64,000 nucleotides of DNA, from NCBI GenBank assembly GCA_013115145.1, contig JAAPAO010000099.1, positions 1 through 64,000 of the forward strand. Direction: 5' to 3'. The notes beneath the pieces are model-generated. The model searched no databases. It saw only the letters and a program-made list of their open reading frames with translations, and was not told the origin of the DNA. This DNA comes from Perkinsus chesapeaki ATCC PRA-425 (Eukaryota; Protista; Perkinsozoa). Each line of letters opens with the position of its first letter. Position 1 is the stretch's first letter. A program made the position numbers and the translations under genes. Of the stretch, positions 7,499 to 25,200 are shown one piece after another.

Positions 7499-10431
7499 AG
7501 ATTTTCAGTATAAATATTATCTTCGTTTCAGCCACGTTCGGCAGTTTCGACCAGGCATGGAATTCTGAGCACCTCCCCAAACGGGCGATCACCAGATGAT
7601 ATAGAAATAAGGTGGGCGGATGGAGTTACGGTGGGTTTAGGATCTGGCTTAGATTCCAGAAAGTCCATGAGATGAACAGTCGATTGAACAGAGCAATGGG
7701 AGCTATCAGAGCACACAGTAAGATATTGGATACCCAGGGGCTCCCTTGAGGGAGCCTCTCGTACGATATCCTGTCTTTTCATAAGGGAACAACCAACCAC
7801 CACATGCGCAGTGCACCTTGATTGCGTTGCTTTATTCAGCTTGGGCAGTTCGCTAGTGGCTCTGTAATGCTCTACGAAGCTCTAAGTATCCGTGTATCTT
7901 TATTTGTTGAACTCATGATAGATGCAAAGGAAAATAATTTAGGGAGTGTGAATGATCTTCACTATTGCAGATGGTGGGAGAGTGACTTCCAGTAAAGGTG
8001 ACCGCAGCCCTCGAGAGAGATTGAAGAAAAATACGGTATGAGAAGTAAACCGAAAGAGCTAGCTGCCCTTACTTCAGGCAATACGAATGTCCAGGTGATG
8101 AAGTTGAAGATTGTTGAGGTGTGTAGCATTAGTAAGATTGGACTCATGTTGACTGGATACGGATGATAATGAGACATAAAGATCAGTGTTAGTCATTCAA
8201 TTCAGGGAGTCATAGAGATGGGAATTGGTTTGAGATATCGGCCTTAATAGAAGCCTAATTTGTACTAGGTCCCAGGACAGCTTTTTGACCCATGGAACAC
8301 ATTCGTGTCTGATTTTGGCATCGTCTTCTGGACAACTCCTCAATACTCCAGGTTGATTTTTTCGCCATTAAGGCAGCTCGGTTGGGTAACCTAGTAGGCC
8401 TCTCCGACATCTCAGTAGCGTCATTACTGGTAGTGTTGAAGCCAAGATCTGGCTTAATGCAAAGCCTCGCAGTTTGGAGAGGGAGGCGAAGTTATGCTAT
8501 AGATGCTAGTTGTTGTGATTAATTTTGTTTATCTAGCACTTGTGAATTCTTCCCAAAATCTATTATGGCGTCTATTGAGAATGACAATCTCTTTTTATTG
8601 CATCCATACGGCCACTGGCCGTCGGTCAGGCGACTGCATCGCCTCCTGACGGCACTATTGGAGTTTATAAGGTCGGTGTGATGCATGTGATGGCCGCCGA
8701 CAGGACTGAGTAAAATTGAGAGAAGATTCACAGAAGTTTATACTCTCCATGAGGATGCGAAAAGGGGATCTTGGCGCTCAACTGAGGAAGGTCGACATAT
8801 ATTCCAGCAGTGCATTCGAGGTTGTTCCCAAACGTATCAGTTTTGTCCGGATGGTTCACAAAAAAAGTCGTTCAATGAAATGATTTACTTTCAGTTAAGA
8901 TTTTTTGAACTACTTCATGTCGGACAGGAGCAGACATGCTTGCAGCAATTGTCAGGAAGGGAGCGATCAGTTGCACCTCTCTGTGAGCCATCGATCGATT
9001 TAACAGTGAAATTCGGGTTTAAAATCCTACGTGTTCCTCGCTGTGACTTCCTATAGCTTAATGATCGTGTGACGGCTTGATGCTAGCGAGTAATCTTAGG
9101 CGGCTAATTTTCGTGACCAGCGTGTGTGGTGAAGTTAAAATTTAACTTCTCAACAGAGAACTTCAATTTCACTCTGCACGATGGTGATGCTGTGGATTTT
9201 ACAGCTCACGCGCGACCGGTAAGGCAAGTGGTCGTTGCGTTGTCTCTTTCTTTGAAGAAGCTCATCTGTGAAACTTCGAGGATAGAATAGGAATGTCACC
9301 AACAAACTCGCGAAACTTCTACCATTGGTATATAAAAATTCGTCTTGTTTTGCAGTCAAGAGAATGGCTCACTTGTGATCTTATTCATGATATATTTCTT
9401 CGTTTAGGATTCGGTTGGCGGCGGCAAATCTCAAAGGACTGAAGGGATGCCGCTTCGCCGTGATGGTCAGAGTAAGCAGGGCCCGAGCAGATACTACTCT
9501 GGCAGATGATCCAGGAATCTCGATTCGTGTTTTTTTGCTTCACGAAAGGGGAATGCGGAATTTTAACCAAGGAAAATGCTTTCAATGTCTAGGAAGATTT
9601 TCATCAAACTTCTCACCATTTTTATGTGACTCATCAGATATTATCAATTTCGAAATTAAAGGTTTAATTCTTCATGAAATCGAATCTCTTAAAAGTAAGT
9701 TTCTATGAATAACTCTGTAGTATTTTGACATTTGGACACTTCTCGCCCCTCCTTCGTGTGACACGGCCCACCTGGTCGATTATGACCTCACTAGTAGCTG
9801 GCTAGGAGAGCCATAGGTGTTTTGTTGAAGCTCCTCCAGTCAGCATCCTGTTAAGTGAACATAAAGCGCTTTAGGCCTAGGTTGAGACCCTCCCATGCTT
9901 GGCTCGCTTAACTCAGCATAAGGGCGATTCTGCTCGGGTAATGTTAATGTAAATCGCTTTCAAGGTACCGGTAGTGTTGGGTCCCGTTGCACTGGCCGAT
10001 TCACCATCGAAGACGGAGAATCTATTTCCTTTGACAGGCTTCCCGGAGGTGGGGTGGGCCTGGAGGATTACTCCACTCCTATTGGTTTCGGGCTCTCGTC
10101 CGGTCGGGCAGAAGAATTCTCAATCTCCGGGAGTTGAATAAATTCTGCAACGGTGAATTCATTGGACAATCTGCCAGCGCGAATGGCCTCTACATTATAT
10201 AGCACCAGTGAAATAATTGACAGTTCCGTCAATAGCTAATAATATCAGTGCAATGTGAAACCTAGTTGCTGTTGAATGTCGATTCAAGCCGCAGCCGAAG
10301 CCAGACTTAACGAGTGTACTGGTATCCATCACCATCTGTTATCAGCAGTGTGTTTTATCTTCAAAGACTCTACTTGCAATGAAATATTCGCTCTGGGCTT
10401 GCCTGATAACATTAGACAGCTATTTATCACA

Positions 10432-11102
10432 TTATAGTAATACTTCATTACGTATCTCGATAGCTGTTAATGTATTAAATCTATTTCCCCTTCCAGGTAG
10501 CGTTTCTATCCGACGTAAGGAGACCCTAGACGAGCTCGACATCGAACCCGTGCTGGAAAATTCCTCTCTTTGGAGGTCAACAGCTTCCTGCTGTGAAATC
10601 GCGGGGGAGACTGATGGCCAAGGATCAGGCGAAGAGTCACGGAGGGAATCTTGCAGCAACGGATTCGGAGACACTCGGTCGTGCTGTGCGGAATTGCCGC
10701 GGCCACAGCTTTCGGTTAAGGTGAGCGTTCGTGGATTCAGGACATACTAGAGCAGGATAGGCGGAAGGAAATGCAAAATACAGTATTTTTACCACCTCTG
10801 TCCGAAGTATATTAGTTTTCAAAAATTCAAACCCCAAAGTTTTCCCGTACCAAGGCCACCGAACCTTTAGCGTAGAATGCGGGCTGTAGTGTGATGATGT
10901 TTTCATAAATCTTTCAACGGAAAGTGGTTGATGCGGCATTGCTGGGATTTAGGTGCCCAAGAGAATCGGGAGATTCGACGTAGTCGAAGCCACACCGACA
11001 GCGCGCCCTGTGCGGATGCCTTCGGTAAGTATTCGTTGATGAGGAGGTGTTGCTTCTCGCGACACTCGCCTGCGGTGTGACTTTTTTTCTCAGATGCTCC
11101 AT
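10432..11102 (-). CDS. Hypothetical multi-exon protein (Ser/Pro-rich)
   Basis: Open segments MEHLRKKVTPQ... and ...SPNPLLQDSLRDSSPDPW... with splice-like boundaries; no recognisable domain. Confidence 0.3.
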
Positions 11103-12317
11103 ATAGATTCTTGGGACAGTAATCCTAGTGGCGGTGAAAGCACTTTACAGGTGGTAGACCAGTTAATGAAATATACCTCAACAGACTATGTCTCGCTTAC
11201 TACCGAACGCCCTGCCTATTTGGCAACTTGCCAATGGCAAGGCGACTAATACTTGCTTCCGCCCGGGATCTTTCACGCTATTCGGAAGCTTTGGTGTGGC
11301 AGTCCTTCTGGGATTTGCGGCCAAGTCAAAAAATAGCTACAGACTTGCTGAATGAACATCAGGCAATCGAATCAATATTGGCTTCGTGTGGCAGTTGTAC
11401 ATCAACAGGTTATGGTTTGGTGTCATTTACAGAAGTTATTTAGTGAGTAGTATTTTCGAAAGTCTAAATTCAGCACGTAGTAGGTTTACGATCTACTTCC
11501 CCTAGAAAACTATCGGAATCCAGTCACTAATTTTATTCCTTCCGTCACTGCATGGCTTGATTGTAGTTACTGGATGATCTTAATCGACAAGTCAGAGCTC
11601 TTCTTGATCGAAATGCGGCGCTCGAGGCGGAAAATTCACTGTGAGGATTTTAGTGCGGTGATTTCTCGAGACTCCATCTCAGCCTGCATAGTCGATGTGA
11701 ACGATTCTCAAAGCAGCTTCGAGAGCTCGGAGCTCAACCGGAGACCCCTGCAGATGTGAGCGCACAAACTACTATTACTAAATGTCTTGTTGTTGTTGTT
11801 GCAGTTTCCAGTCGCACTCACTCGTGCCGACACTCCTCCTGCTTATTTTGCTATGCGTCATCATCCATTTAAAAATGAGAATACTAATGGAATGGGATTG
11901 CCATAAGATTGTACTTTTGTAAGTCATTTTCGTTAGCAAATAATACCTGTACGTTTGGTGGCTTATCGGGAATACGACATGCGCCCATAATGGCTGGCTC
12001 GGAATGCTTCGCTATGGAAGAGCGTCGTTTTCGGTACTTAATTCGGTTGTGTTTCCCTTTCAGGTTTCTGTTCCGTGTCTCTGTACATCATCACTTTGCC
12101 TTCGCTAATCAGCGACGTTTTCCCCATCTTATGGTTTGAGTTTTCCGAGTGATAAGCCACACTACCCGTCCGTGAATTAATCGATAACCTGTGAATTCAA
12201 TTAGTCGTACTGGCAGCTCTTGCAGCTACATAAAGGACAATGGACTCTCGCGTTAATATATACACAGTTGTGCTACACATCTTTGGAACACAAGAGATAT
12301 ACTCCCTACGATACGCG

Positions 12318-12589
12318 TATTTATGCGGAGCACAACTTGTTGTGTGTAGAGTAAATACGCGTATCGCAGGGAGAGCATGTCCGTTGCGCACCAGAGATGT
12401 GTCGCACAACTATATATATATATATACTTTTATATATATATTACGGGCCAGCGAGTGCCCATGCGACGACGGCCAAGGGTTGTGTTCAAGTAGTGGTTCA
12501 AGGCCACCAGTGTAACCACATGGGCTTCTCGCTAACCTTCCGGTTCATCCTGCTGTAGCAGTATTGTGCCAAAAAAGGCAAATTTTTTT
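12318..12589 (+). repeat. Split direct repeat A1
   Basis: Nearly identical to 18802-19077; differs by one substitution and in TA/T tract lengths. Confidence 0.95.
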
Positions 12590-12593
12590 CCTC

Positions 12594-13734
12594 ATGCCCG
12601 TCTCCGAAGGCATCCAAGAGATCGTCGAGAAACACTGTGACGATGAGATCATCCTCAAGGCTGTGTTGGAGGTCCTCGAGAGTGGGGCGGTGAGCCGCGT
12701 GGCCCTGCTCGCCGGCCTCAAAGACTCCGACATAGATTTCTTGCGTGATGCTGTCCTTGAGAAGGACGATAGCCTCAAGGTTAAGAAGGTGGCTATTGGT
12801 GCCACTTTCAGGGCTTTGGTTCGAGAGGCTTCGTTCCAGATGGACCTCGCCGAGACGGCCGGGCGGGTTAAGCATGCAGCTTCCCGCCAGGAACAGTCGG
12901 TCATTGCCCTGAAGTCTAGGTTGAAGACGTTAAAATCTCTTTTCGGTCTGGATACTATTGACAACGACGTCTTCCCTACCCTGGAGGTTTTCAACAAGCT
13001 CAAGTCCTCTCTGGGTACATTCGTAGACTTCAAAAGGGAGTTGCACAACTGCAAGTACGTGCCGTCCGAGAAGAATGTTCTGCTCAACTTATCAACTGGT
13101 GAGGGACAGCCAGCGCTAGCAGCGATTCCTCTAAAGGAATCTGGTGCCGGAGAAACGCCAGACGATAAGCTTGGAGGTTCCTCTTGGCTTAGCTGTTTCA
13201 ACAGGTACATGTTGGGTCTTCTCCTCGCTGACTGTGACGCCGGTGACAAGGGTGTTCGCGACAACGGCGACGGTCACTTGCCGTTGCCTAACATTGATCC
13301 CCTAACCCTCTTGACCTATCAGGCCAAGATTTCTCAGATCGCTTCCGATTCTGGTTGGAGTGTAGCTACTCTGGTCGACGATAGATTCAGGCGGGTGGTC
13401 GAGACCAAGTTCATGAATGGTTCACGGTGAAAACAGGAACGGAGAGGTGAACCGTTCACCTCTCCGTTCCTGTTTTCAAGACTTCGCGGTTCTGGCTGGT
13501 TTGAGAGTGGAGTTGTCTATGAGGTCTTCCGGCTCTGGCGGTTCGAAGCGTTCGAGCGTCTCCTCGCATGAAAATAACCCAAATAAGAAGAAGAAGAAGT
13601 CGAAAGGCCCCTGTTACGACTTCCTTGCTAACGGAGTGTGCAAGCGGTCCAATTGCCCGTATGCACACAGAAAGGCATCTGGGAAAGCTGAGAAGGGCGA
13701 GAATGATGCTCCCAAGAAGGGTTCTGCAAAGTAA
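12594..13734 (+). pseudogene. gag: gag-like ORF1 with a C-terminal CCCH zinc finger, frameshifted by a 34-nt insertion
   Basis: Removing 13426-13459 joins ...KFMNGS-PLRSCFQDFAVLAG... into one ORF of about 368 aa ending CYDFLANGVCKRSNCPYAH. Confidence 0.8.
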
Positions 13735-14182
13735 TGCATGTTCCTTGCATTTCTCTTTTTTTTTCTTGCGTCGTCTTCTCGGATTTCTTCGACCATTGCG
13801 CTCGCAGAACGGGTAATCCTGAGTGACTCTACGCTGCTCTGTTCTCGTTGTGAGGTCTACCTTGTTGCGTTGTTACCCACTAGTTTGGATTCGCAACGTC
13901 CTTACCGGTGGAGGGCTCTGTCCGTATAGGCGCGGCGGAGTAAACAGTAGGCGTTCGGGATCGGCTAGTAAAACAGGCTAGCGAGGCCCTTCGCGACTGT
14001 TTGGAGCGGTTCAGGAACACCCTCCAAGTCAGCGATTCCGTTGGGGTCGTCGGGTTTATCGAGGTTCGAAATCCTCCTTAAACAGCGAATAAAGCATTCC
14101 TCGTCTGTCCTGCTATTATGCACGAGGACGACGGATAGGCCGTAGTAACCGGTAACTCATTTAACTGGTGAATCACCAGTGG

Positions 14183-14204
14183 TTACCATGATGGTAATAC
14201 CATC
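14183..14204. other. Excision footprint, perfect (W=TTACCATC)
   Basis: ttaccat gatggtaa taccatc. Confidence 0.85.
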
Positions 14205-14489
14205 AGCTCTCAGTTGGCTCACTCCTTTGTGAGTCGCATTGTGAGCATGACGATTCCTGGTAGGCCTCGGTACTGCTTGGAGAGGTCCGGAAACCTCATC
14301 CATGGTAGCGCCAGGTTGTCCGTTGTCGCCCGTCCTGCTATTGTGCATGACAGGGCCGACGGAATAGTCATATTGGCTCACCATTAAGCTCTCCAAGAGC
14401 TGCTTTTGAGTTTATGAGCAACCGATCCAAATGTCTGTTTGTGATTTCGGGCCAGGTCTTTACCTCGTAAAGATGGGTGGGGGCCCCAA

Positions 14490-14511
14490 TCTGAGAGTCT
14501 CAGACTGAGAC
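14490..14511. other. Excision footprint, perfect (W=TCTGAGAC)
   Basis: tctgaga gtctcaga ctgagac. Confidence 0.85.
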
Positions 14512-14671
14512 CAATGGGTCCCACGAGAGGACTATCTAGTTGAGTCAGAGCCAGTGGTATTGCCAGTTAGGGCAATCACACACTAAAGGCCGAGCTGTCT
14601 CAAAGACGGTGTCTCTCAGAGAGATTCTCCCTTAGCTCCATTAGGACCTCGCCTGTGCTCCTTGGGCCTCG

Positions 14672-14693
14672 CCAGGGCGGCCCTGGCAGGGCC
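14672..14693. other. Excision footprint, perfect (W=CCAGGGCC)
   Basis: ccagggc ggccctgg cagggcc. Confidence 0.85.
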
Positions 14694-14814
14694 TTTTTCC
14701 AGTCATAGACCGGGACAGGGGCTGCTTGGTGATGCTCAGTCTCAGAGCGGCCCAGATTGGGCCTGATTCCTAAGGAGTTGGGTGGTCCGTGTTCCATTGA
14801 GGGGTTATCGTTCT

Positions 14815-14836
14815 GTCGTCATTGACGAATCGTCAT
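14815..14836. other. Excision footprint-like motif (6-bp core exact, both central bases deviate)
   Basis: tcgtca t tgacga a tcgtca. Confidence 0.65.
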
Positions 14837-15041
14837 TTTGATGGCGTCGAAGGACGTGAAGTCGACCTCTGCCTGCCTGGGTCTCAGGCTGTGGGGCCGG
14901 TAGTCACGGGCTGGTTAGTAACAGGCAGTTTACATCTGGGCGATGTTGGCAACATTATGCTGCCCAGTTCTCGCAAGAGGGGGATGTGTAGAGTTACAGC
15001 CTCTGGGCCAGAGGCTGTGGCTTTGTGTAGTCGCCTGCTGA

Positions 15042-17325
15042 ACGAGTCCCGCTCCCATACCTCCCCATCGTTCTCTGTTTTTTTTTCTCCTTTTTTCGCA
15101 GCTCAGCCGCTCCTTTCTTAGGCCCATTGGTCCACCCCTAGTCACGTCGGGGGAGGTTCACAAGCATCTGCAAAACATCGCCGACCTCGTTAGCGACAAC
15201 GCTAGAGAAGAGGAGAGGCTTTTGCTAGAGTCCTTGGTGGACGGCACAGGCGAACGTGGCGTACTTTCGCGAGATGACTTTGCAAAACCTACTGACTCCA
15301 TGACACATCTTGTAAATATCTTCCTGGAGGAGGTGGAAATCTTATCCTCACCGCGTGTGGTCGAGAAGATCATGTCGTGGGCCGCTCTGGATCGTGAAAG
15401 CCAATCTGAGAGTACCGTCTGGAATGAGCTTGAGAGTTCTATCCAAGTCTGCGCAGAGCGAATAAGGAACTCGTGGGGTGCGGTCTTGGGGGTTCCCACT
15501 CGGTCCGCCTTGGCGGGTGGTCCTATTCGCGCTCCGCTTGTAGAGGCAGTACTCCGAAAGATGCAGAAGGAGTCTCCCCAACGAAAAATTGACTCGGATA
15601 TATTCCCGGAATATATCCGAGTCAATTTTTAATATTATATTATTCCGTCTGATTGATGTCGGAGTGCCTCTGGGGACATCATCCGAGGTGGCCGTCAGTG
15701 GCGCTTGGCCTACTTACCACCCCAAGCACAAGCACGACTATCAGCTCTCGCGCGATCTCTGGCGAAACTATGAATCCGCGGAGCATTATAGCGAGGAGGT
15801 TACTAAAACTATCGAGGCCGAGATCACGGCTGACCGGATGGCGGTCATTGACCGAGGTGACCTTGGCCAAGTTCGAGCCGTGACTCGACTAGCGTGCATC
15901 CCGCATTTCAAAGAGGATGGTACTATTCGGAAAGTCCGGTTAATCGATGATATGAGGCGAAGCGGTGCGAACTGTCTTAGAGAGCCTAACCTGCAGGAAA
16001 CTATCCTGCTTCCATCTATACGTTCGGCGGTGGCCGCTGTGCTGCAGGACGAAGGTTCGCCAGGTCCTAGTTCTCCAGGCCGCGTTTTCTGGCTCGAATC
16101 AGATATCCGGAGTGCCTTCCGCCTAGTGCCATTGGCCGAGCCCGACACTTGGTTTTGCGTGAACAAAGTTCATGAGGGTTTTGTGAGGCATTTGATGTTG
16201 CCCTTCGGGGCTACCAGTAGTCCTCTAATCTTCGTGAGGGCATCTTCAGGTGTCGCTCTCATCGAATGTCGAGTCCGGCGACAGGCGGAGTTGCATCCCC
16301 GCGTGATCATATACGTAGATGATAGAGGTTCTAAGGCTCGTGCCAAGCAGCTAGCGAAGGCTACACTAATATCAATATTAGTCGACGCAGTCTGCGGCGT
16401 TCCGACCGCCACGGAAAAGTTACATGCCTCTACCACTCCACACTGCCTGGGGTTCGTCATGGATCTTGACAGGGGGGTTCTCACCATCCCGCACGAGAAA
16501 TGTACCACAATTGGAGACGCACTACTCCCTCTGACTACCGTAGGCTCTCTTGCAGTTGTGAAAGATCTCGAGCGATTGACGGGCCGGCTCAGTTGGGTGG
16601 CCGGAGCTTTCAAGAGAATCAACCCTTTCTTGTCCTCCTTCTACAGTACTCTGAAGGTTGCCGAGTCCAAGGGTTTAAGGTCTATAACAGTTGGCCGCAA
16701 TCTAGCCTACGCGGCCCGTTTCCTCCGTCATTTTATTTCGGCGGACTGCTCTATTCCCTTCAACAGCCTCCTACCGGAGTTGGGAACGCTTGCGCGAGCT
16801 GTTGTCGTATTCGATGCATCTGGTGGCTTCCTCGGGGGTGTTGTATTTGAGCGCAATCCTCCAGGCTGTGGTCATTCGTTCTACTGGTACCACCTCGATT
16901 TGAACGACGAACGAGTCGTTAGCAGCGTAAAACAGATTCTTGGCTATGGCGACGAGGTCTTGGAAGGGATTTGCTTCCACGAGCTCCTTTCGGCAGCTCT
17001 CGGCATACTGCTCACTGACCCATCCCAGCCCGTTGTTGTCGTTTCCGATAATGTGGCCTGTGTGAGAGCACTACAGAAGATGCGGAGTAAGTCTGCGGCT
17101 CTCAATTGTATTTTGGAGCGACTTATGCTCGTTCGTCCTGGCTTGGCAGCCCCATCTCTATATGCGCAGCACCTTGCCGGGGAGCTCAATATCCTGGCAG
17201 ACCAGATATCGCGTAGTGATATACAAACTAACCGGAGTATTTTCTACAGAGTTGACGGTGCTGTAGAGCGAGACGCTTTGCTCGAGTTGGCGAAGCTTAC
17301 ATGCGCAAGGACCGGCGGTTTCTGA
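15042..17325 (+). pseudogene. DIRS-type reverse transcriptase plus RNase H, frameshifted by a 40-nt insertion
   Basis: Motifs KVRLIDDMRRSGAN, ESDIRSAFRLVPL, LPFGATSSPLIF, YVDD, and RNase H FDASG...ELL...SDN...HLAGELNILADQISR. Removing 15607-15646 restores DSDIFRLIDVGVPLG. Confidence 0.92.
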
Positions 17326-17458
17326 GTAGGTTGTTTCTCTGTGATGCCTCAGTCTCACAGCTGTTTCAGTCAGAAGGGTCCTGAGTTCAGTCCGCTATTA
17401 TTGAGCGTTCAATCAAGCGATACCGTTCCCTTTTCCCTGATTTGATAGACAGATTGGG

Positions 17459-18592
17459 ATGGTCCCAGCATTCACCCCTCTGAAGGCTTGCCAGCGCGAA
17501 CTATCAAACCGGAAGTCATTCGGCCGGCCCTCACTGACTCGTGCGGATAGGCCTCCAATCGTTCGTGGGACCATCAGTCCCAAACGACGAGGCTCAGCCA
17601 AGAAGGCCTCATATGTCTCGAAACGTCTGTCGCGTGAGGACGTGAATGCGTTTGTGACTGAAGCCAGGGCCCCCAGTACGAGGAGGTCATATGAAGCAAT
17701 AAGGAAGGCTTACGTGAGAGTTATGGAGAGCGCACAAATTGTCCCATATCCGCTGGTGCCGGCTAAAGCTATTCACTTCATAGTATCGCTAGTTAAGGGC
17801 GATTATACGTATGAAAGTGTCAGAAACTATGCACAGCGCATCAAATCTTTAGCGAAAGAGGAACGTGGCGATGTTTTTGATGTCTAGGGAGAAGAGCGGT
17901 TCAAGCTGGCTCTGCGTGCTGCGTCCAAACTGTGCCGCCAGGCCAGTTCAATTGAACAGAAACGCGCCGGGACTTTCACAGCAGACGAAGTCATTGCTAT
18001 TGCGCATATCCAGGACCCCTTACACGAAGGAACCGTATGTGCGATCCTATGCGGAGTCAGCTGTCTGTTGAGAGTCAATGAACTGCTGGCGCTATCTAAG
18101 GGCGATATTCACTTCAGCTCTGACGGCCTGTCGGCCCAGATCATCGTAAGGAGGAGCAAAACAGACCCCAGCGGGCGGGGTTGTCAGCTCACGGTGGGCT
18201 GCCTGTGCGGACAAGGCCCTGCACGTGACGAATGCGCGGTGCACAGGCTGAGGTGGTGGGTATGCGTGACATGCGAGGCGGAAGACAGCCTCCTGTTCCC
18301 GTACACGAGAGACCGCTTTATTAAGGACATGTCCGATCTAGCATCCAGAGCAATTGGTTTTCGTGGTTGTGTCGGACGGTCGTTCAAAGGGCACTCTCTT
18401 AGGCGGTCGGCAGCCCAGATCCTCTTTCATCATGGAGTTAACATCGAACACATAGTTGAAGCCGGGAGGTGGGCCTCGTCGCGCTCCCTGTCGATGGCAT
18501 ACTTGAGAGAAGGAGCATATAAACCTATCCGTCAAGCTGAATTGACGAGGATAATGCTGGACACCTCTCGCTTCCAAGCAGTGAGGACGTAA
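17459..18592 (+). pseudogene. Tyrosine recombinase with one in-frame TAG (17885-17887)
   Basis: The reading frame is continuous across the TAG; catalytic motifs LLRVNE, RSKTD, HSLRR, GRW and SMAY are present. Confidence 0.92.
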
Positions 18593-18616
18593 AAGTAAGA
18601 ATAGTGGAAAGAGGTT

Positions 18617-18801
18617 GGGAGGAGCTAGGTGTCTGATACCTTTAGCTGACGGCCTTGCAGTCGGCACGTCACAGTGATAGAGTCTTGTGGCTGACTCATC
18701 CGTTCAGGTATCGACGCCAAGCTCGCGACTTTGCCTCCAGCAACTGCTCTACATTGCTGCAAGGCAATGTCGCCCTCTTCCCACTCTCCCGAAGAGATAG
18801 C
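18617..18801 (+). repeat. Split direct repeat B1
   Basis: 185 bp, 2 substitutions relative to B2. Confidence 0.95.
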
Positions 18802-19077
18802 TATTTATGCGGAGCACAACTTGTTGTGTGTAGAGTAAATACGCGTATCGCAGGGAGAGCATGTCCGTTGCGCACCAGAGATGTGTCGCACAAGTATATA
18901 TATATATATATACTTTTTATATATATATTACGGGCCAGCGAGTGCCCATGCGACGACGGCCAAGGGTTGTGTTCAAGTAGTGGTTCAAGGCCACCAGTGT
19001 AACCACATGGGCTTCTCGCTAACCTTCCGGTTCATCCTGCTGTAGCAGTATTGTGCCAAAAAAGGCAAATTTTTTTT
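18802..19077 (+). repeat. Split direct repeat A2
   Basis: Copy of A1 immediately after B1. Confidence 0.95.
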
Positions 19078-19086
19078 GTCTCTTTC

Positions 19087-19271
19087 GGGAGGAGCTAGGT
19101 GTCTGATACCTTTAGCTGACGGCCTTGCAGTCGGCACGTCACAGTGATAGAGTCTTGTGGCTGACTCATCCGTTCAGGTATCGACGCCTAGCTCGCGACT
19201 TTGCCTCCAGCAACTGCTCTACATTGCTGCAAGGCAATGTCGCCCTCTTCCCACCCTCCCGAAGAGATAGC
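19087..19271 (+). repeat. Split direct repeat B2
   Basis: Copy of B1, followed by the terminal TATTTA. Confidence 0.95.
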
Positions 19272-19796
19272 TATTTACTCTACACACAACAAGTTGTGCT
19301 CCGCACACAAACGAGGGTGCACGGTGTCAATACACACATTTTGGTTAGTGATCGTGTTGGCGAATTACCGTCCTCTTGGTCAAGTAAACCACTGGACTAG
19401 TGAGCCAAAACTTGGTCATGTTTGAACAATTCTCCGTTTATAGACTATAGATCTCTCACTCACGGTGTCATGACGTATATAAAGCTAGTAGCTCCGGCTA
19501 TATGTGACCAGCCTGTGGGTGGCGTTTAGTGCTACGAAACAGTGGCAGTACTGCTGCAGGTTTGAACAGTGCAATACTTTCAGGTTCCTCGACATTATTG
19601 CAGGGTTTAACTCCCATAAAGTTTGAAGGGATTTATACGCCGCTTGGTAAGCTTTTGAGTTTCACGTTTTTGACGTGTCTGTTTGAGTTTCACTGATTCG
19701 CTCCCCTAACAACGTGCCCCAATGGAGTGCGTGTGCACTTAGTTTGACTATTATTTACTTTCAAACACCAGTCATACTCCCTCAGAAACCTTTCTT

Positions 19797-21984
19797 TTAA
19801 AGTTTAAAATTTTCAAGCCATGCGCGTTCGATGCCAGCGCAATGTCCCATGCCTACCACCCCCACCATTTTACGGTAATTAGATCGACATAGGTAACCTG
19901 ACCAGTTTAAGAATCGCATCAGGAAGAGTCGCCCTTATCTCACCGGCCATTGTCCGATCTCGGTCTTCAATCATAACCTCGTAGACATGCGGCGCGCACT
20001 TCTGCATGATTGAGTTTATCTGGCCAGCTTTCTCACGACTCTTCAATTGCTCAGCTATACTGAGTATACCTGTCAGTCCCAACTGATTGTGAATATTCGC
20101 TAAGATGTACCTCCAGTATGATCAACGTCGAGGTCTTGTAGTTCTCTACATGCCAGCATCTGCTGCCAGTCTTGCTGAAGAGCTTTTGTGAGGCCCTCCA
20201 TGGTCAAAGTGATATCAACGTCCCCGGTGATAACCTAGAAAAATAAAAGCATTTCTTACATAAAAATAACCTGCAAAAACTCAGCACAAAGAGATAACCT
20301 TTTCGGTTACGAAGCCTGAGCTCGGTCGTTCACAAGAATCAACAGGGAGGAACGCAGAGAGGAAAGAGCCTTCCATTTTTCAGGAGCTTGTCCCCGACTA
20401 ATATGCAACTTGTGAAACGCTAAAACTTGTCCATTCGACCTGCAACCGTCCCACTGGGACCGTCTCAGGGTACATATAAGAAGCGAGGTTAACTGCTAAC
20501 CCACCTATCGCCATTAATTAGACAGTCCCTCATTCGAAGGAAATGTCACCCTACCCACCCTGGCTCCAATCTCCTCCGCGGTCTGGACCGCGGTCTTGAA
20601 CTCCGCTCCCGGCTCTATCCCCATCGACTTGAAGTTACCTTGAGAAATAAAGTATTTGAGAAGGGAGGATCGAGTTCCAAGTGAACTCAGTGCTGATTGT
20701 CTTTGAGTGATATGCAGTATTGGAATGTATGCATGCATTCAACTATGTTGGCAAGACAGGAAGAATTCGGGAATTTTCCACAAAAATGGCCCCTAACATC
20801 GCGTAGCAGTAAAGTGTAAGTTCTATACTTAATCGAAGGCCGTTATAGTCATCATCATGCTCAAGCTGATCTAACATGTGTATTATTATAATCGAGGTTT
20901 TGAGAACCCGCATGATACTATTATAAGATATATAATCCTTGGTTTTATTGTACCATAGAAGCCTCGAAGCCCTTGCTCCAACATAGCCTGCAGAGGGAGG
21001 CCTCCACCGGAGCCAACTCCACGCAGGAGGACTTTAAGCATTTCCGCGAGGCCACCAGGAGTGTCACCGAAACCACCGGCACGCATCTGAAAGAAGTATA
21101 GGGGCTTAATGTTGAAAAGCTCAAGTGGAGGACGAGGATCAAACGCATTATAATATTCGATAATGCTAATATTCATCGACTAAATTAGACTCTCAAGCGT
21201 CGCCGGATTCGGATACCTTCTGCAGTCTCTTTGGGCATAACTCCACCATTACACCTTCAGGGCGCTCAGTCAGTATCATATCTCGAACTTGCTCTGCACT
21301 GGATGACGACACATGAGCTGTTCCTAAATAACACAGCTACAGAGAATCACCCGAAACTGTCTGTGACATCTCCCAGCAGCATAAGACGGTAATCGATTCT
21401 ATTCGTTCTGGGCTACTGCTGGCCGAGCCAACCTATCCAATCCTACATTGAGTTAAGACTACGCCGGAAGATACTGAAATACCACCCGAATTCACCGCTC
21501 GAATAATATATAACTTTTTTATGAAAAGTTTTTATATTGGTTATGTATGACAGATCTTTAAAGCAGAAAATCTCCCTTTCGTGGCGCTCAACAGTAAAAG
21601 CCATTGGCTTCAGCTCTTTGCTGAAACGCTCCTTATTTTCGTGACTCCGTTATATTCACCAAATTGCCCCCCAAGAATGAACCTTCATTGAACGCATATC
21701 ATTTTCCTACCCCAAATTCACAGAGTGCGCATTCAGCTACGTCATTGTCTCAACCGGGTTCAAAGACAATCCTACTGCATGTTCTTCGATCTCGCATGGG
21801 AGAGAGATGCAGCAGTACCCCAGACCTCACCGATGAGAACAACCTCTCTCCCAGATGCTCTTAGATAGCTGACTGTTGGGTTCCTAGTACTGTGCTCTAC
21901 CGATGCTCCTACTATAGAGGAGGAAAAGCATCTTAATGCGAAGCTTAATGCAATGCGAGGACTGTGAAGATATGTAGATATCAT
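19797..21984 (-). CDS. TRABD: TraB-domain protein, multi-exon, with a possible mitochondrial presequence
   Basis: REVVLIG/TAHVSSSSAEQVRDMILTERPEGVMVELCPKRL, GIEPGAEFKTAVQTAEEIGA, GDVDITLT, DRDRTMA and MVGVVGMGHCAGIERAW are TraB family motifs. Confidence 0.88.
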
Positions 21985-22249
21985 TCAACAAACGACTGTA
22001 TAAACTACGTAATTTTCAGTTTGAGTCTCGGCGGCTGCCCGACTTGGATTTATGGTCATTCGAGTGCGCCTTTGAGCCGTGAAAAAGTTGCCCGCCTTTG
22101 GCACGCATTCTCAGATGACACGTGCTGTAAACATATAAATATTTTTCGCGATTAAAGATAACGATTTTTTATGGCGACAGAAATGATGAACTTGATCAAT
22201 GATGAACTTTTGGCCGAAGTGCTCGCCAGTGAATTCAATATTAATGATA

Positions 22250-25200
22250 CTACTAAAATCTCACCCTTCTTTCTTGGGGGAGCTATTCAGAGAAATTAAC
22301 AGTGGAATTTCAGCATCAAACGAATTTCCTGTTCCCTCCATTTTGTTGCGATCCAATCTCTGCGATATGTCCCTCCGGGTCGAACGCTCTCTCTATCCAA
22401 CAACCCTAGAGCTTCCCTATCTGTCCTAATGCCCACAACAACGACTTTACTAACTCAACAACTTCTCAGTGGTACTTACGTATTCAACTATGTAGCACCG
22501 ATACTAAAATGAGTAGCAAGTGTTAGCAATTGATTGATCGGCTCCTAACTGACGGAGCCTGTAATGAGTACAGAAATGTTAAATTCAATGATAATAATAA
22601 TATGAAACTTATATCGACATTGCCCGCATTCTAAACGTCGCAAACGACACTCGATCCTCGTGCCTTTCTCGCAGTTGTTGCTGAACAAAGCACTTCTTGA
22701 GGAATGTTAAACTAGAAATATTACTTGTTTCCAAACCCATTTCCGCATCCGATTGAATTCTGCAACTGACATTGGATCTCGTGGAGGATTGAATGATGAC
22801 TCGCAAGGATGAGTCCGCCGCTCGAGGCCCACTTCTGAAAGGAAAAGGGACAGAGTAATTTTATAAACCGCAAAAACCTAAGTGGTGCGATATAAACACA
22901 TGCTTGTCTAAGGAAGGCAATTTCATGAATGATTCATGATGGGACAACATCGAACATTGATGATGTTGTTCAAAATGGGATTCATGATGAATTCCATTTT
23001 AATCCCGAGGATTGTATAAACAAATACTTATTATATAATTATAAAGATATGTACATCATCCTACCGCAGCTTCGAACTCCATGACTGGAAGACATATTTA
23101 TCTTGACATTGCATACTTTATATATTTTTCTATTGTACGTATATTTCAACTGTTAATCACCTATATTGTATAGTCTCCCCTCTACTATTACTACCATTAA
23201 ATGACACATGATGCTTGCCATGTTCATTTATTCTCTCTCCATTTCTATCATACCGTAACGGCATCAGTAAACTATGTACCCTATCTCGAGTCCTCCTGTT
23301 CTCTTCCAAAGCAAGCTCATCAAATGAACCTTAAAACCAGCAAGATCTTCAACATCCCACTTGAGATTTCTCCTACTTGTCTCGGCAGGGGCTTCACACG
23401 TTCGTTTCAGGATGCTATACACTGGCGTTTTGCACTCATGTGCCACATCTTCAGGCTTTACCACCGACCCATTGGCGCCACGCTTGGGAGGATGCATTGC
23501 AAAGAATCCCGTATGGGGACAGGTTGTGTTGGAAGCTGTCCTGATAGATTATCACATGACCCCTCTCCATGGAATGCCATACAGCAGCAATCGGAAAACA
23601 CCACTACGTGACGTTGTAAAGTTAATAACGCAATCGAAGGGACCGATTAAATCTTAATGAAGTCGATACTCGACACTGATTGAGAATAATAAACCGCTTA
23701 TTATAATATTGAGACCTTTCAGACATTTACATAATCATTAATAATATATCGGCTGTATTGAACGCATACAACTGCAACAATTGTATTCTAATTTGACGGA
23801 TTCAGTGAAAGCTCCTAGCCGAGAAGAAAAGACAGGCCTACAACTTCTAGGCTTCAAGTTTCGGCCCGGACTTGACATCTGATCGGTATCATATCCATCA
23901 CTGCCAGCGAAACCGAGTACTGCTACTTTCCCTTTATAAATATCAAATCGTCTTTCCCTCCCTTCCCCCGTTTCCGTCGCTCCACCGTATTTCGACGCTC
24001 TAATTTTTAGATTCTCTTTCCCCTAGTACTTCTTCGGGCTCTTTTCTCCAGCACTTGCCGGCAGTCCACGATGGGGCAACCCAGCATGTCGATGATGACC
24101 CCCGCCCGCACTCCCTGGACCTCCAGGCTGCTCCTGAGACACCACCTTTATAGATTACTGTTTCAAAGCTTTGAATAAAGAACAGGTTACTTTGAACAGA
24201 TCTCTCACATATCACCAATCAACAAAACAGCATGTACTTGATAAACAGCGAACATTCGGGTTGGCATATCCACAGCGACTGTCGGACAGATTCCTTTTTT
24301 AAGGTTTCCTTCTCCCTTAAAACTTTATTAACATAATCATATCCTGCAGCCTATTCGAGCATTGGCTATATTAAGGGGTTGTTATACTATATTCTTATAA
24401 GTCATTATTTACTTCATTATCACACTTATTTATTAAACATTTTATAACTCCATTCAAGAAGATCCAAAAACACCCGACACCTTCTCTAGAATTGTCCGCG
24501 CCTCCCCAACTACCTGCACAGCATCGTCATCTAATGACAACGATATCCCTTTCTCTCTAACTTTGGGTCTGGCTCCTACAAGCAGGGATACCACATACTA
24601 CAAAGCAAGAATTGTAGCTAAAGTGGGTGCATAGTCGCAAGTACGGATTGTCTCTCCAAGGAAGAATCAACCACTCGCCGCTCTTCTCAGTAGTACGCTT
24701 ATGACAAGCATTATCTCCCGAGACATGGAGATTCTTATATTGATAAAAAAGAGGAACGGCCAAAGAGGATGTATTATCAACATGCCTACTGTACTTGCCC
24801 GAGCCTCTCTTTAAAGACATTGAAGATAATTTTGCTACAGTAGTTTCCGAAAAACCGTATCTGTTCTTTACAGGGACATCCCCTCCTTTTTCACTACGTC
24901 CTGTCTCTTCATTCCCTTTGCGCCTATCCCTTTCAATTAGGAGTCTAAGTCCCCTCGAACATGCTCCACAGCAATTCTCAATCGGTGTACTAGACGACAA
25001 TCGCCTTCGAGATGGTGACAGCGGCATTGGTGTCATCGCATATGATAACATTAAAAACACAATCCTGAAATTAGTGGTTCGATCGTCTACATGCGAGGAA
25101 TTTTTCACCCGATAGTAGCAATACTATTATCACCATTTTCACATGATAGCCGACACGTAGCTCAGAAGCAGGATTATTGCAGTAGTTCCTTACGAGACGA

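Follow-up and report, generated by a model that had tools for sequence, protein, structure and literature searches.

A Ngaro-like retrotransposon of Perkinsus chesapeaki probably inserted into an attachment-like site within the repeat of a sibling element

The window analyzed here, a 64,000-nt stretch of the genome of Perkinsus chesapeaki ATCC PRA-425 (contig JAAPAO010000099.1, positions 1 to 64,000 of the forward strand), contains a retrotransposon with a tyrosine recombinase (YR) that lies precisely inside an inverted, diverged remnant of the A repeat of a related element (Table 1). Its host is a parasite of shellfish, and Ngaro elements, the type that it resembles, are a little-studied kind of element. 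The gene order is gag, reverse transcriptase (RT), YR. On the second of the two recombinase open reading frame (ORF) pieces a Phage_integrase domain (PF00589) was matched with E = 1.4e-7, and a sibling element on contig C157 has a single recombinase ORF of 410 aa that matches Phage_integrase as well. The RT ORF gave only a weak RVT_1 match (20.1 bits, compared to the Pfam cut-off of 29.6), and a P. olseni relative bears the name of a reverse-transcriptase-domain protein. The best protein matches overall were hypothetical proteins of P. chesapeaki. Pfam detected no RNase H in the ORFs of the window copy or of the C157 element, and, within the limits of its sensitivity, no methyltransferase match was obtained for any ORF of these two copies. 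The gene order, the split repeats and the lack of a methyltransferase match fit an element of Ngaro type rather than of DIRS1 type. Membership of the DIRS1-like group was considered and rejected, because the terminal repeats are direct and split, not inverted, and the inverted A pieces outside the element belong to the target. A1 and A2 are identical at 265 of 266 positions, besides a 3-nt length difference in a TA run, and B1 and B2 at 189 of 191; since both pairs are nearly identical, the insertion is young.

Table 1. Features of the element and of its target in the window (positions of the whole stretch)
Feature	Position	Strand	Remarks
Left target part, diverged inverted A-like remnant	12256-12317	-	Corresponds to A nt 41 to ~104 of a sibling element
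TATTTA core, left junction	12318-12323	+	Crossover region common to target and putative circle junction
Whole retrotransposon	12324-19277		6954 bp; split direct repeats, order A1-genes-B1-A2-B2
A1 repeat	12324-12589	+	
Conserved block within A1, nt 7-56	12324-12373	+	
CACAAC-TT-GTTGTG in the conserved block of A1	12331-12344	+	
Inverted core TAAATA in A1	12352-12357	+	
GGGAGAG in A1	12369-12375	+	
ORF1 region, gag-like, CCCH zinc finger	12564-13734	+	Broken by a 34-nt fold-back insertion (palindrome at 13428-13478)
Reverse-transcriptase ORF, 578 aa	15589-17325	+	Weak RVT_1 match; 23-bp palindrome at start
Tyrosine recombinase, two ORF pieces	17459-17887 and 18068-18592 (overall 17459-18592)	+	
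B1 repeat	18617-18807	+	Ends in CTCTCCC-N11-TATTTA (18784-18807)
A2 repeat	18808-19076	+	
B2 repeat	19087-19277	+	Ends in the TATTTA core, 19272-19277
Right target part	19278-19305	-	Reverse complement of A nt 7-34, 28/28; CACAAC 7 nt from core

Two perfect palindromes with 1-nt spacers lie inside the element, at 13428-13478 (25-bp arms) and at 15584-15630 (23-bp arms). Relative to a 95%-identical sister copy on contig C9, the former corresponds to a 34-nt insertion that is an inverted copy of the adjoining sequence, a templated fold-back scar breaking gag; the C9 copy has another small palindrome just downstream of that position. This sister copy (L066, C9:2838-7950) stops after one B repeat, without A2-B2, and has no stretch corresponding to 18283-18558 of the window; it may represent a product of recombination between B1 and B2.

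The hexamer TATTTA is present at three places, namely at the joint of the left flank and A1, at the joint of B1 and A2 (18802-18807), and at the end of B2 before the right flank. When the flanking segments 12302-12323 and 19278-19305 are joined, they form the reverse complement of A nt 7-56 at 49 of 50 positions, with the sole mismatch at 12308 and an equal score against A2, a match that is far beyond chance. The rebuilt target contains a single TATTTA, which becomes two upon insertion, and no bases are gained or lost, so that the locus displays no target duplication, no base loss and a short common core, as expected of conservative YR integration. Such an exact empty site could be rebuilt from homology for two insertions, the window copy and a nested copy on contig C2947 that is described below. 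Past the core block the left flank continues as a diverged inverted A, with 35 of 45 positions identical to A nt 59-104 (none of 2000 shuffles scored as high), and the whole pre-insertion fragment aligns with A nt 7-104 at 85-86%. Weaker similarity may extend to approximately A nt 146 (~12170 in the window), and beyond the equivalent of that position the flank showed no A-like or B-like sequence. The target is therefore a lone, diverged, inverted A remnant, firm over about 100 nt and possibly extending to about 140 nt. These results reproduce what the sequence-only reading of this locus had described, namely the TATTTA borders, the match of the joined flanks, a second and inverted core within A, and the divergence of the left flank outside some 50 conserved nucleotides.

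These nucleotides were also compared with the related copies in the genome, which was searched as a short-read-style assembly of 41.7 Mb in 3544 contigs. The 28-mer at the start of A had 31 matches and the end of B had 29, and all matches to the 28-mer continue into an A body, except for the target at 19272-19299. In 27 A copies that were compared with A1 of the window, identity is 80-95% over nt 7-56 and only 30-50% from nt 57 onward. The conserved block spans approximately B -36 to A +56, and at least two element families of this genome have conserved ends, which comprise ~50 nt at the start of A and ~36 nt at the end of B. The first family comprises the window copy, the C9 copy, solo AB units on contigs C2889 and C3014, and a decayed copy on C630, while the second consists of more than 20 AB units of ~490 bp that are 80-95% alike, for example L045, L047 and L050-L055 (contigs C3348, C1851, C3287, C1741, C459, C2828, C2931 and C3009). 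No full-length copy of family 2 was seen in the assembly, and its AB units represent solo AB relics or, alternatively, a non-autonomous derivative in which only the conserved junction ends are left. Because identity of 49/50 followed by ~78% mirrors the conservation profile across families, the target can be assigned to a remnant of a sibling family, and the 50 nt singled out by the sequence-only reading are the block conserved across all families, as expected of such a remnant.

Truncated 5'-fragments of A occur frequently (C3137, C3098 and C3423 are examples), and in two internally deleted A copies, L067 (C3014:2023-2307) and L071 (beginning at C630:56719), 56-64 nt at the start and ~20 nt at the end have been retained; such deletions agree with the view that function resides in the conserved block. 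Genome-wide, at least 40 loci with related tyrosine recombinases and approximately 75 with related RTs were found, many of them on short contigs, and YR retrotransposons are thus both diverse and abundant in this assembly.

The borders of the conserved block coincide with the outer arms of a dyad at the junction of B and A. In family 1 this junction reads CTCTCCC-N11-TATTTA-N7-CACAAC-TT-GTTGTG-N7-TAAATA-N11-GGGAGAG, which means that A contains TATTTA-N28-TAAATA with the N28 centered on CACAAC-TT-GTTGTG; arms and spacings are the same in family 2. For comparison we used the C157 element, whose RT is 42% identical, a family shared by P. olseni and P. marinus (L102, L103, L105), and a further family of P. 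olseni (L107, family 5). In each of these three further lineages, which differ in sequence, an inverted copy of the lineage's own junction core lies 27-38 nt into A (core/inverse pairs TTTTA/TAAAA, AATTTCG/CGAAATT and GATTTCA/TGAAATC), and between both cores there is a 5-7-bp palindrome whose center is at most 1 nt from the middle of the spacer. Core and inverse core therefore co-vary between lineages. Shuffle tests for an inverted core plus palindrome, run per lineage and with no centering required, gave P = 5e-4, 0.015, 2.5e-4 and 2.5e-4 for the four lineages (Fisher combination, P 2e-9). By these tests, the layout of core, spacer, centered palindrome, spacer and inverted core is conserved, with differing sequences, in four independent Perkinsus lineages. 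In single-strand folds of family 1, C157 and L102 the core pairs with the inverse core, at modest stability (z -1.1 to -2.3); an alignment across families with MAFFT and RNAalifold placed the cores out of register and yielded no usable consensus. We also considered TAAATA as a TATA-like promoter box. This reading fits families 1 and 3 only and was rejected as a general explanation, since GAAATT and TGAAATC, the inverse cores found in families 4 and 5, do not resemble a TATA box and yet mirror the cores of their own families. The dyad is described here as new, although the original descriptions of Ngaro elements (Goodwin and Poulter 2004; Poulter and Goodwin 2005) may already contain it.

The hexamer CACAAC in the center of this dyad is a candidate half-site for the recombinase. 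In the putative circle junction, in the window target and in the target on C2947, the crossover is followed on its right by CACAAC at a distance of exactly 7 nt, and in the C2889 target at 6 or 7 nt, depending on the placement of one extra A. A holds four CACAAC hexamers, two per orientation, and the chance that two random positions in A, in either orientation, would both have CACAAC at +8 to +13 is ~5e-5. The composite pattern TATTTA-N7-CACAAC occurs at 33 sites genome-wide, compared to 6 for a reversed control pattern; 21 of the 33 are inverted second cores of A repeats and three are junctions of flank and A or of B and A. As these 24 sites lie in A repeats or junctions, about three quarters of the best composite sites come from the elements themselves.

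When the insertions are considered as a whole, the preference is a loose one. For about 25 of 30, the surrounding DNA is unrelated and has in common only wTTTr followed by C. Left flanks, 31 in number, have T at positions -2 to -4 in 18-20 cases, and among the 28 right flanks 14 have C at +1 and 16 have A at +11, which describes a loose general target, wTTTr then C, that resembles the core. Of the four family-1 copies with both ends, three have TATTTA on either side, in the left flank and at the end of B. In addition, 16 empty sites for which both flanks were available were rebuilt and compared with the elements' own A and B repeats. Two were clear nests, the window copy and a family-2 unit on C2947; three were weak (C2889, P 0.013; C2931/L054, P 0.017; C157/L097, P 0.06), and the remaining 11 gave nothing. 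The host of the family-2 unit on C2947 is an inverted, family-1-like A, which is interrupted at about nt 177 and aligned across the gap with no base gained or lost. The C2889 target combines TATTTA and CACAAC, at N6/N7, with a weak alignment to inverted A. The P. olseni targets L102 and L103 look by eye like inverted A as well, a likeness that the test did not support (P 0.73 and 1.0). The preference for the pseudo-site is accordingly real but loose. Through the nesting the left junction of the window copy (12300-12380) has become a near-perfect, hairpin-prone palindrome of ~72 nt (-24.8 kcal/mol, z = -7.8), and as palindromic junctions of this kind may be unstable, old nests may be under-counted.

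Taken together, we consider it likely that a young Ngaro element was inserted by conservative tyrosine-recombinase action into the pseudo-attachment site of a sibling, with sibling-targeting as a by-product of the symmetry of the site. A junction-bearing, presumably circular copy (B-TATTTA-A) would recombine by a conservative crossover inside the 6-bp TATTTA, its partner being the second, inverted core in an old A remnant from a sibling family, chosen for its likeness to the element's own attachment site. Because the junction is a dyad, a reversed A resembles the right half of the junction (the core, C and N7-CACAAC); read backwards, the remnant matches the junction at 29 of 50 positions (counted by hand), including the whole core and CACAAC...GTTGTG. 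The target itself would be older or of another family, as its flank is 78% identical past the conserved block. A crossover between the circle junction and an inverted core in an A-like repeat, which the sequence-only reading had put forward, remains the simplest history, since it requires no base change and the 6-bp core is common to both partners; the circular or junction-bearing intermediate, catalysis by a recombinase of the element's type and recognition of the CACAAC half-site would all be parts of it. The further suggestion that the element may carry and seed its own landing pad was borne out in part: the elements do supply most TATTTA-N7-CACAAC sites, and there are two clear nests among the 16 rebuilt sites and a probable one on C2889, but 20 of the 21 inverted second cores have stayed without an insertion, and most copies lie in DNA that is unrelated. 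Moreover, a genome search with the flanks 12000-12317 and 19278-19600 returned only their own locus and short A-start matches, and because these flanks are unique in the genome there is no landing-pad family. Our data thus support sibling-targeting as a tendency that arises from the symmetry of the site, with no dedicated landing pad.

Several observations weigh against this explanation. There is a single perfect case with two to three supporting ones, all from one fragmented assembly, and the nest on C2947 has at most 1 nt of core in common with its junction, so that identity over 6 bp is no general rule. Left flanks of family 2 are merely T-rich, inverted second-core sites are unoccupied with one exception, and the sibling family to which the target would belong has no further copy in the assembly. 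The count of nests may be inflated by the gathering of transposons in gene-poor DNA, and the circle junction and the activity of the recombinase are steps that we infer. Finally, the right junction is uncontradicted by contigs from public runs, and no independent contig bridges it (the short contigs break at repeat borders).

The conserved dyad also invites comparison with systems in which the attachment site folds. Phage integrases are able to use secondary attachment sites, and the attC sites of integrons have the layout R''-L''...L'-R'; both attC and the CTX phage site recombine as hairpins. Similar to the use of secondary sites by phages, the Perkinsus element would have recombined with a pseudo-site like its own attachment site, and, similar to attC, the Perkinsus junction consists of core, spacer, palindrome, spacer and inverse core, a core and an inverse core around an internal imperfect palindrome being found in all four lineages. 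In contrast to attC, the recombinase is no more than a distant relative and crossover takes place at the 5' core, and a folded substrate is an analogy. It is conceivable, although we regard it as unlikely, that the junction module is a structured attachment site that folds in single-stranded complementary DNA (cDNA) and is recombined as a hairpin like attC. Single-stranded cDNA is reported as an intermediate of DIRS-1 (PMC7192593). If this were true, the nested insertion would be a eukaryotic counterpart of attC x attC recombination, and Ngaro elements would build clusters by feeding on one another's repeats.

Alternatively, the element might require just TATTTA, or nothing in particular, and have fallen by chance into an old A remnant in gene-poor DNA. 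The location of most copies in unrelated unique DNA is in line with this view, as are the lack of any ORF of at least 120 aa close to the element and the fact that only one case is perfect. However, when ~37,000 TATTTA sites were taken as equally usable, with ~31 second-core sites and eight family-1 insertions, the probability that at least one of the eight would hit a second-core site was ~0.007, and for two it was ~2e-5, which makes the nests in inverted A an excess over chance. In addition, both clear nests lie in inverted orientation exactly 7 nt from CACAAC, at the low probability given above, and chance nesting therefore appears improbable.

A different origin of the inverted A flanks would be fold-back (snap-back) synthesis on the hairpin-prone start of A at the time of insertion. 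Templated palindromic insertions do arise in this genome: the window copy has the 34-nt fold-back insertion in its gag region relative to C9, it carries a second perfect palindrome, and its left junction folds into a long hairpin. A copy made in this way should nevertheless equal its template, and the left flank matches A at only 35/45, with indels, past the conserved block, as opposed to a single difference in 266 between A1 and A2. Furthermore, the piece in the right flank is 430 nt away from its nearest possible template and joins the left piece colinearly as one A-like fragment, and we therefore give fold-back synthesis very little weight. Even less probable is a local misassembly of repeats. 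The short-read style and the fragmentation of the assembly, and the breaks of public-run contigs at repeat borders, would leave room for one, but it is strongly disfavored because both flanks fit to the base into one colinear A-like fragment; besides, left-flank letters are joined to TATTTA-A in contigs from the public runs of two studies, and the depth inside the element in public runs is about that of unique flank. Last, that the 50-mer is a conserved host sequence, either a landing pad or an RNA gene, copied by the element, as the sequence-only reading had also envisaged, accounts for an unusually conserved block and is yet scarcely credible, given that the other copies of the 28-mer are all starts of A, that the flanks are unique, that Rfam and tRNA (transfer RNA) scans of 11800-19800 and 9000-23000 gave nothing meaningful, and that no RNA run contained the stretch.

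Insertion into elements of the same kind has a precedent in DIRS-1 of Dictyostelium, which inserts preferentially into DIRS-1, at least as the work of Cappello et al. (1984) is cited in PMC3266345 and PMC7192593. As far as these citing papers describe DIRS-1, the two cases agree in that a YR retrotransposon is found within copies of its own kind without target duplication, and they differ in that the Perkinsus nest is inverted and at a defined pseudo-site, with only 2-3 of 16 insertions nested. Furthermore, the Perkinsus element has the split direct repeats of Ngaro elements and not inverted terminal repeats. In the model for the DIRS group, the circle junction carries a short sequence that recombines with its identical counterpart in the target, 3 bp long in DIRS1-like elements, without duplication (PMC3266345, PMC7192593). 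Likewise, in the window the junction and both ends have one short sequence in common, of which the target contributed one copy, and nothing is duplicated or lost. In contrast to that model, the core of Perkinsus family 1 is the 6-bp TATTTA and the evidence points to N7-CACAAC as an additional half-site; in other Perkinsus families the shared core seemingly measures 1-4 nt only. Endogenous virophages are a target of the Ngaro elements of Cafeteria burkhardae (PMC8547959), which resemble the Perkinsus elements in the arrangement A1-[ORFs]-B1A2B2, in the presence of solo AB units and in a type-specific preference for other mobile elements. Their preference is tied to ORF1, with no motif reported (PMC8547959), while in Perkinsus the target is a sibling repeat with a visible motif.

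Target choice of YR retrotransposons is mainly known as the 3-bp rule for DIRS1-like elements, and neither it nor the specificity of their recombinases has been tested experimentally (PMC7192593). The present locus represents a rare exact empty site for a Ngaro element, one that can be rebuilt from the element's own relatives, and to this it adds a core of 6 bp, a conserved dyad with two cores and a candidate half-site. Since the dyad is conserved across Perkinsus lineages of little sequence likeness, it leads to definite predictions for recombinase binding, and it would explain how such elements can nest in one another, as DIRS-1 does in the centromeres of Dictyostelium.

Other targets may be favored by relatives in P. 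olseni. Both ends of the 8.1-kb contig carrying L102 resemble pieces of tRNA by eye, although ARAGORN called no tRNA there, and the related L103 is flanked on both sides (1-2966 and 13202-17154) by tandem arrays of tRNA-Ser(GCT) and tRNA-Arg(ACG) with a unit of ~652 bp, so that the L102/L103 family may favor clusters of tRNA genes.

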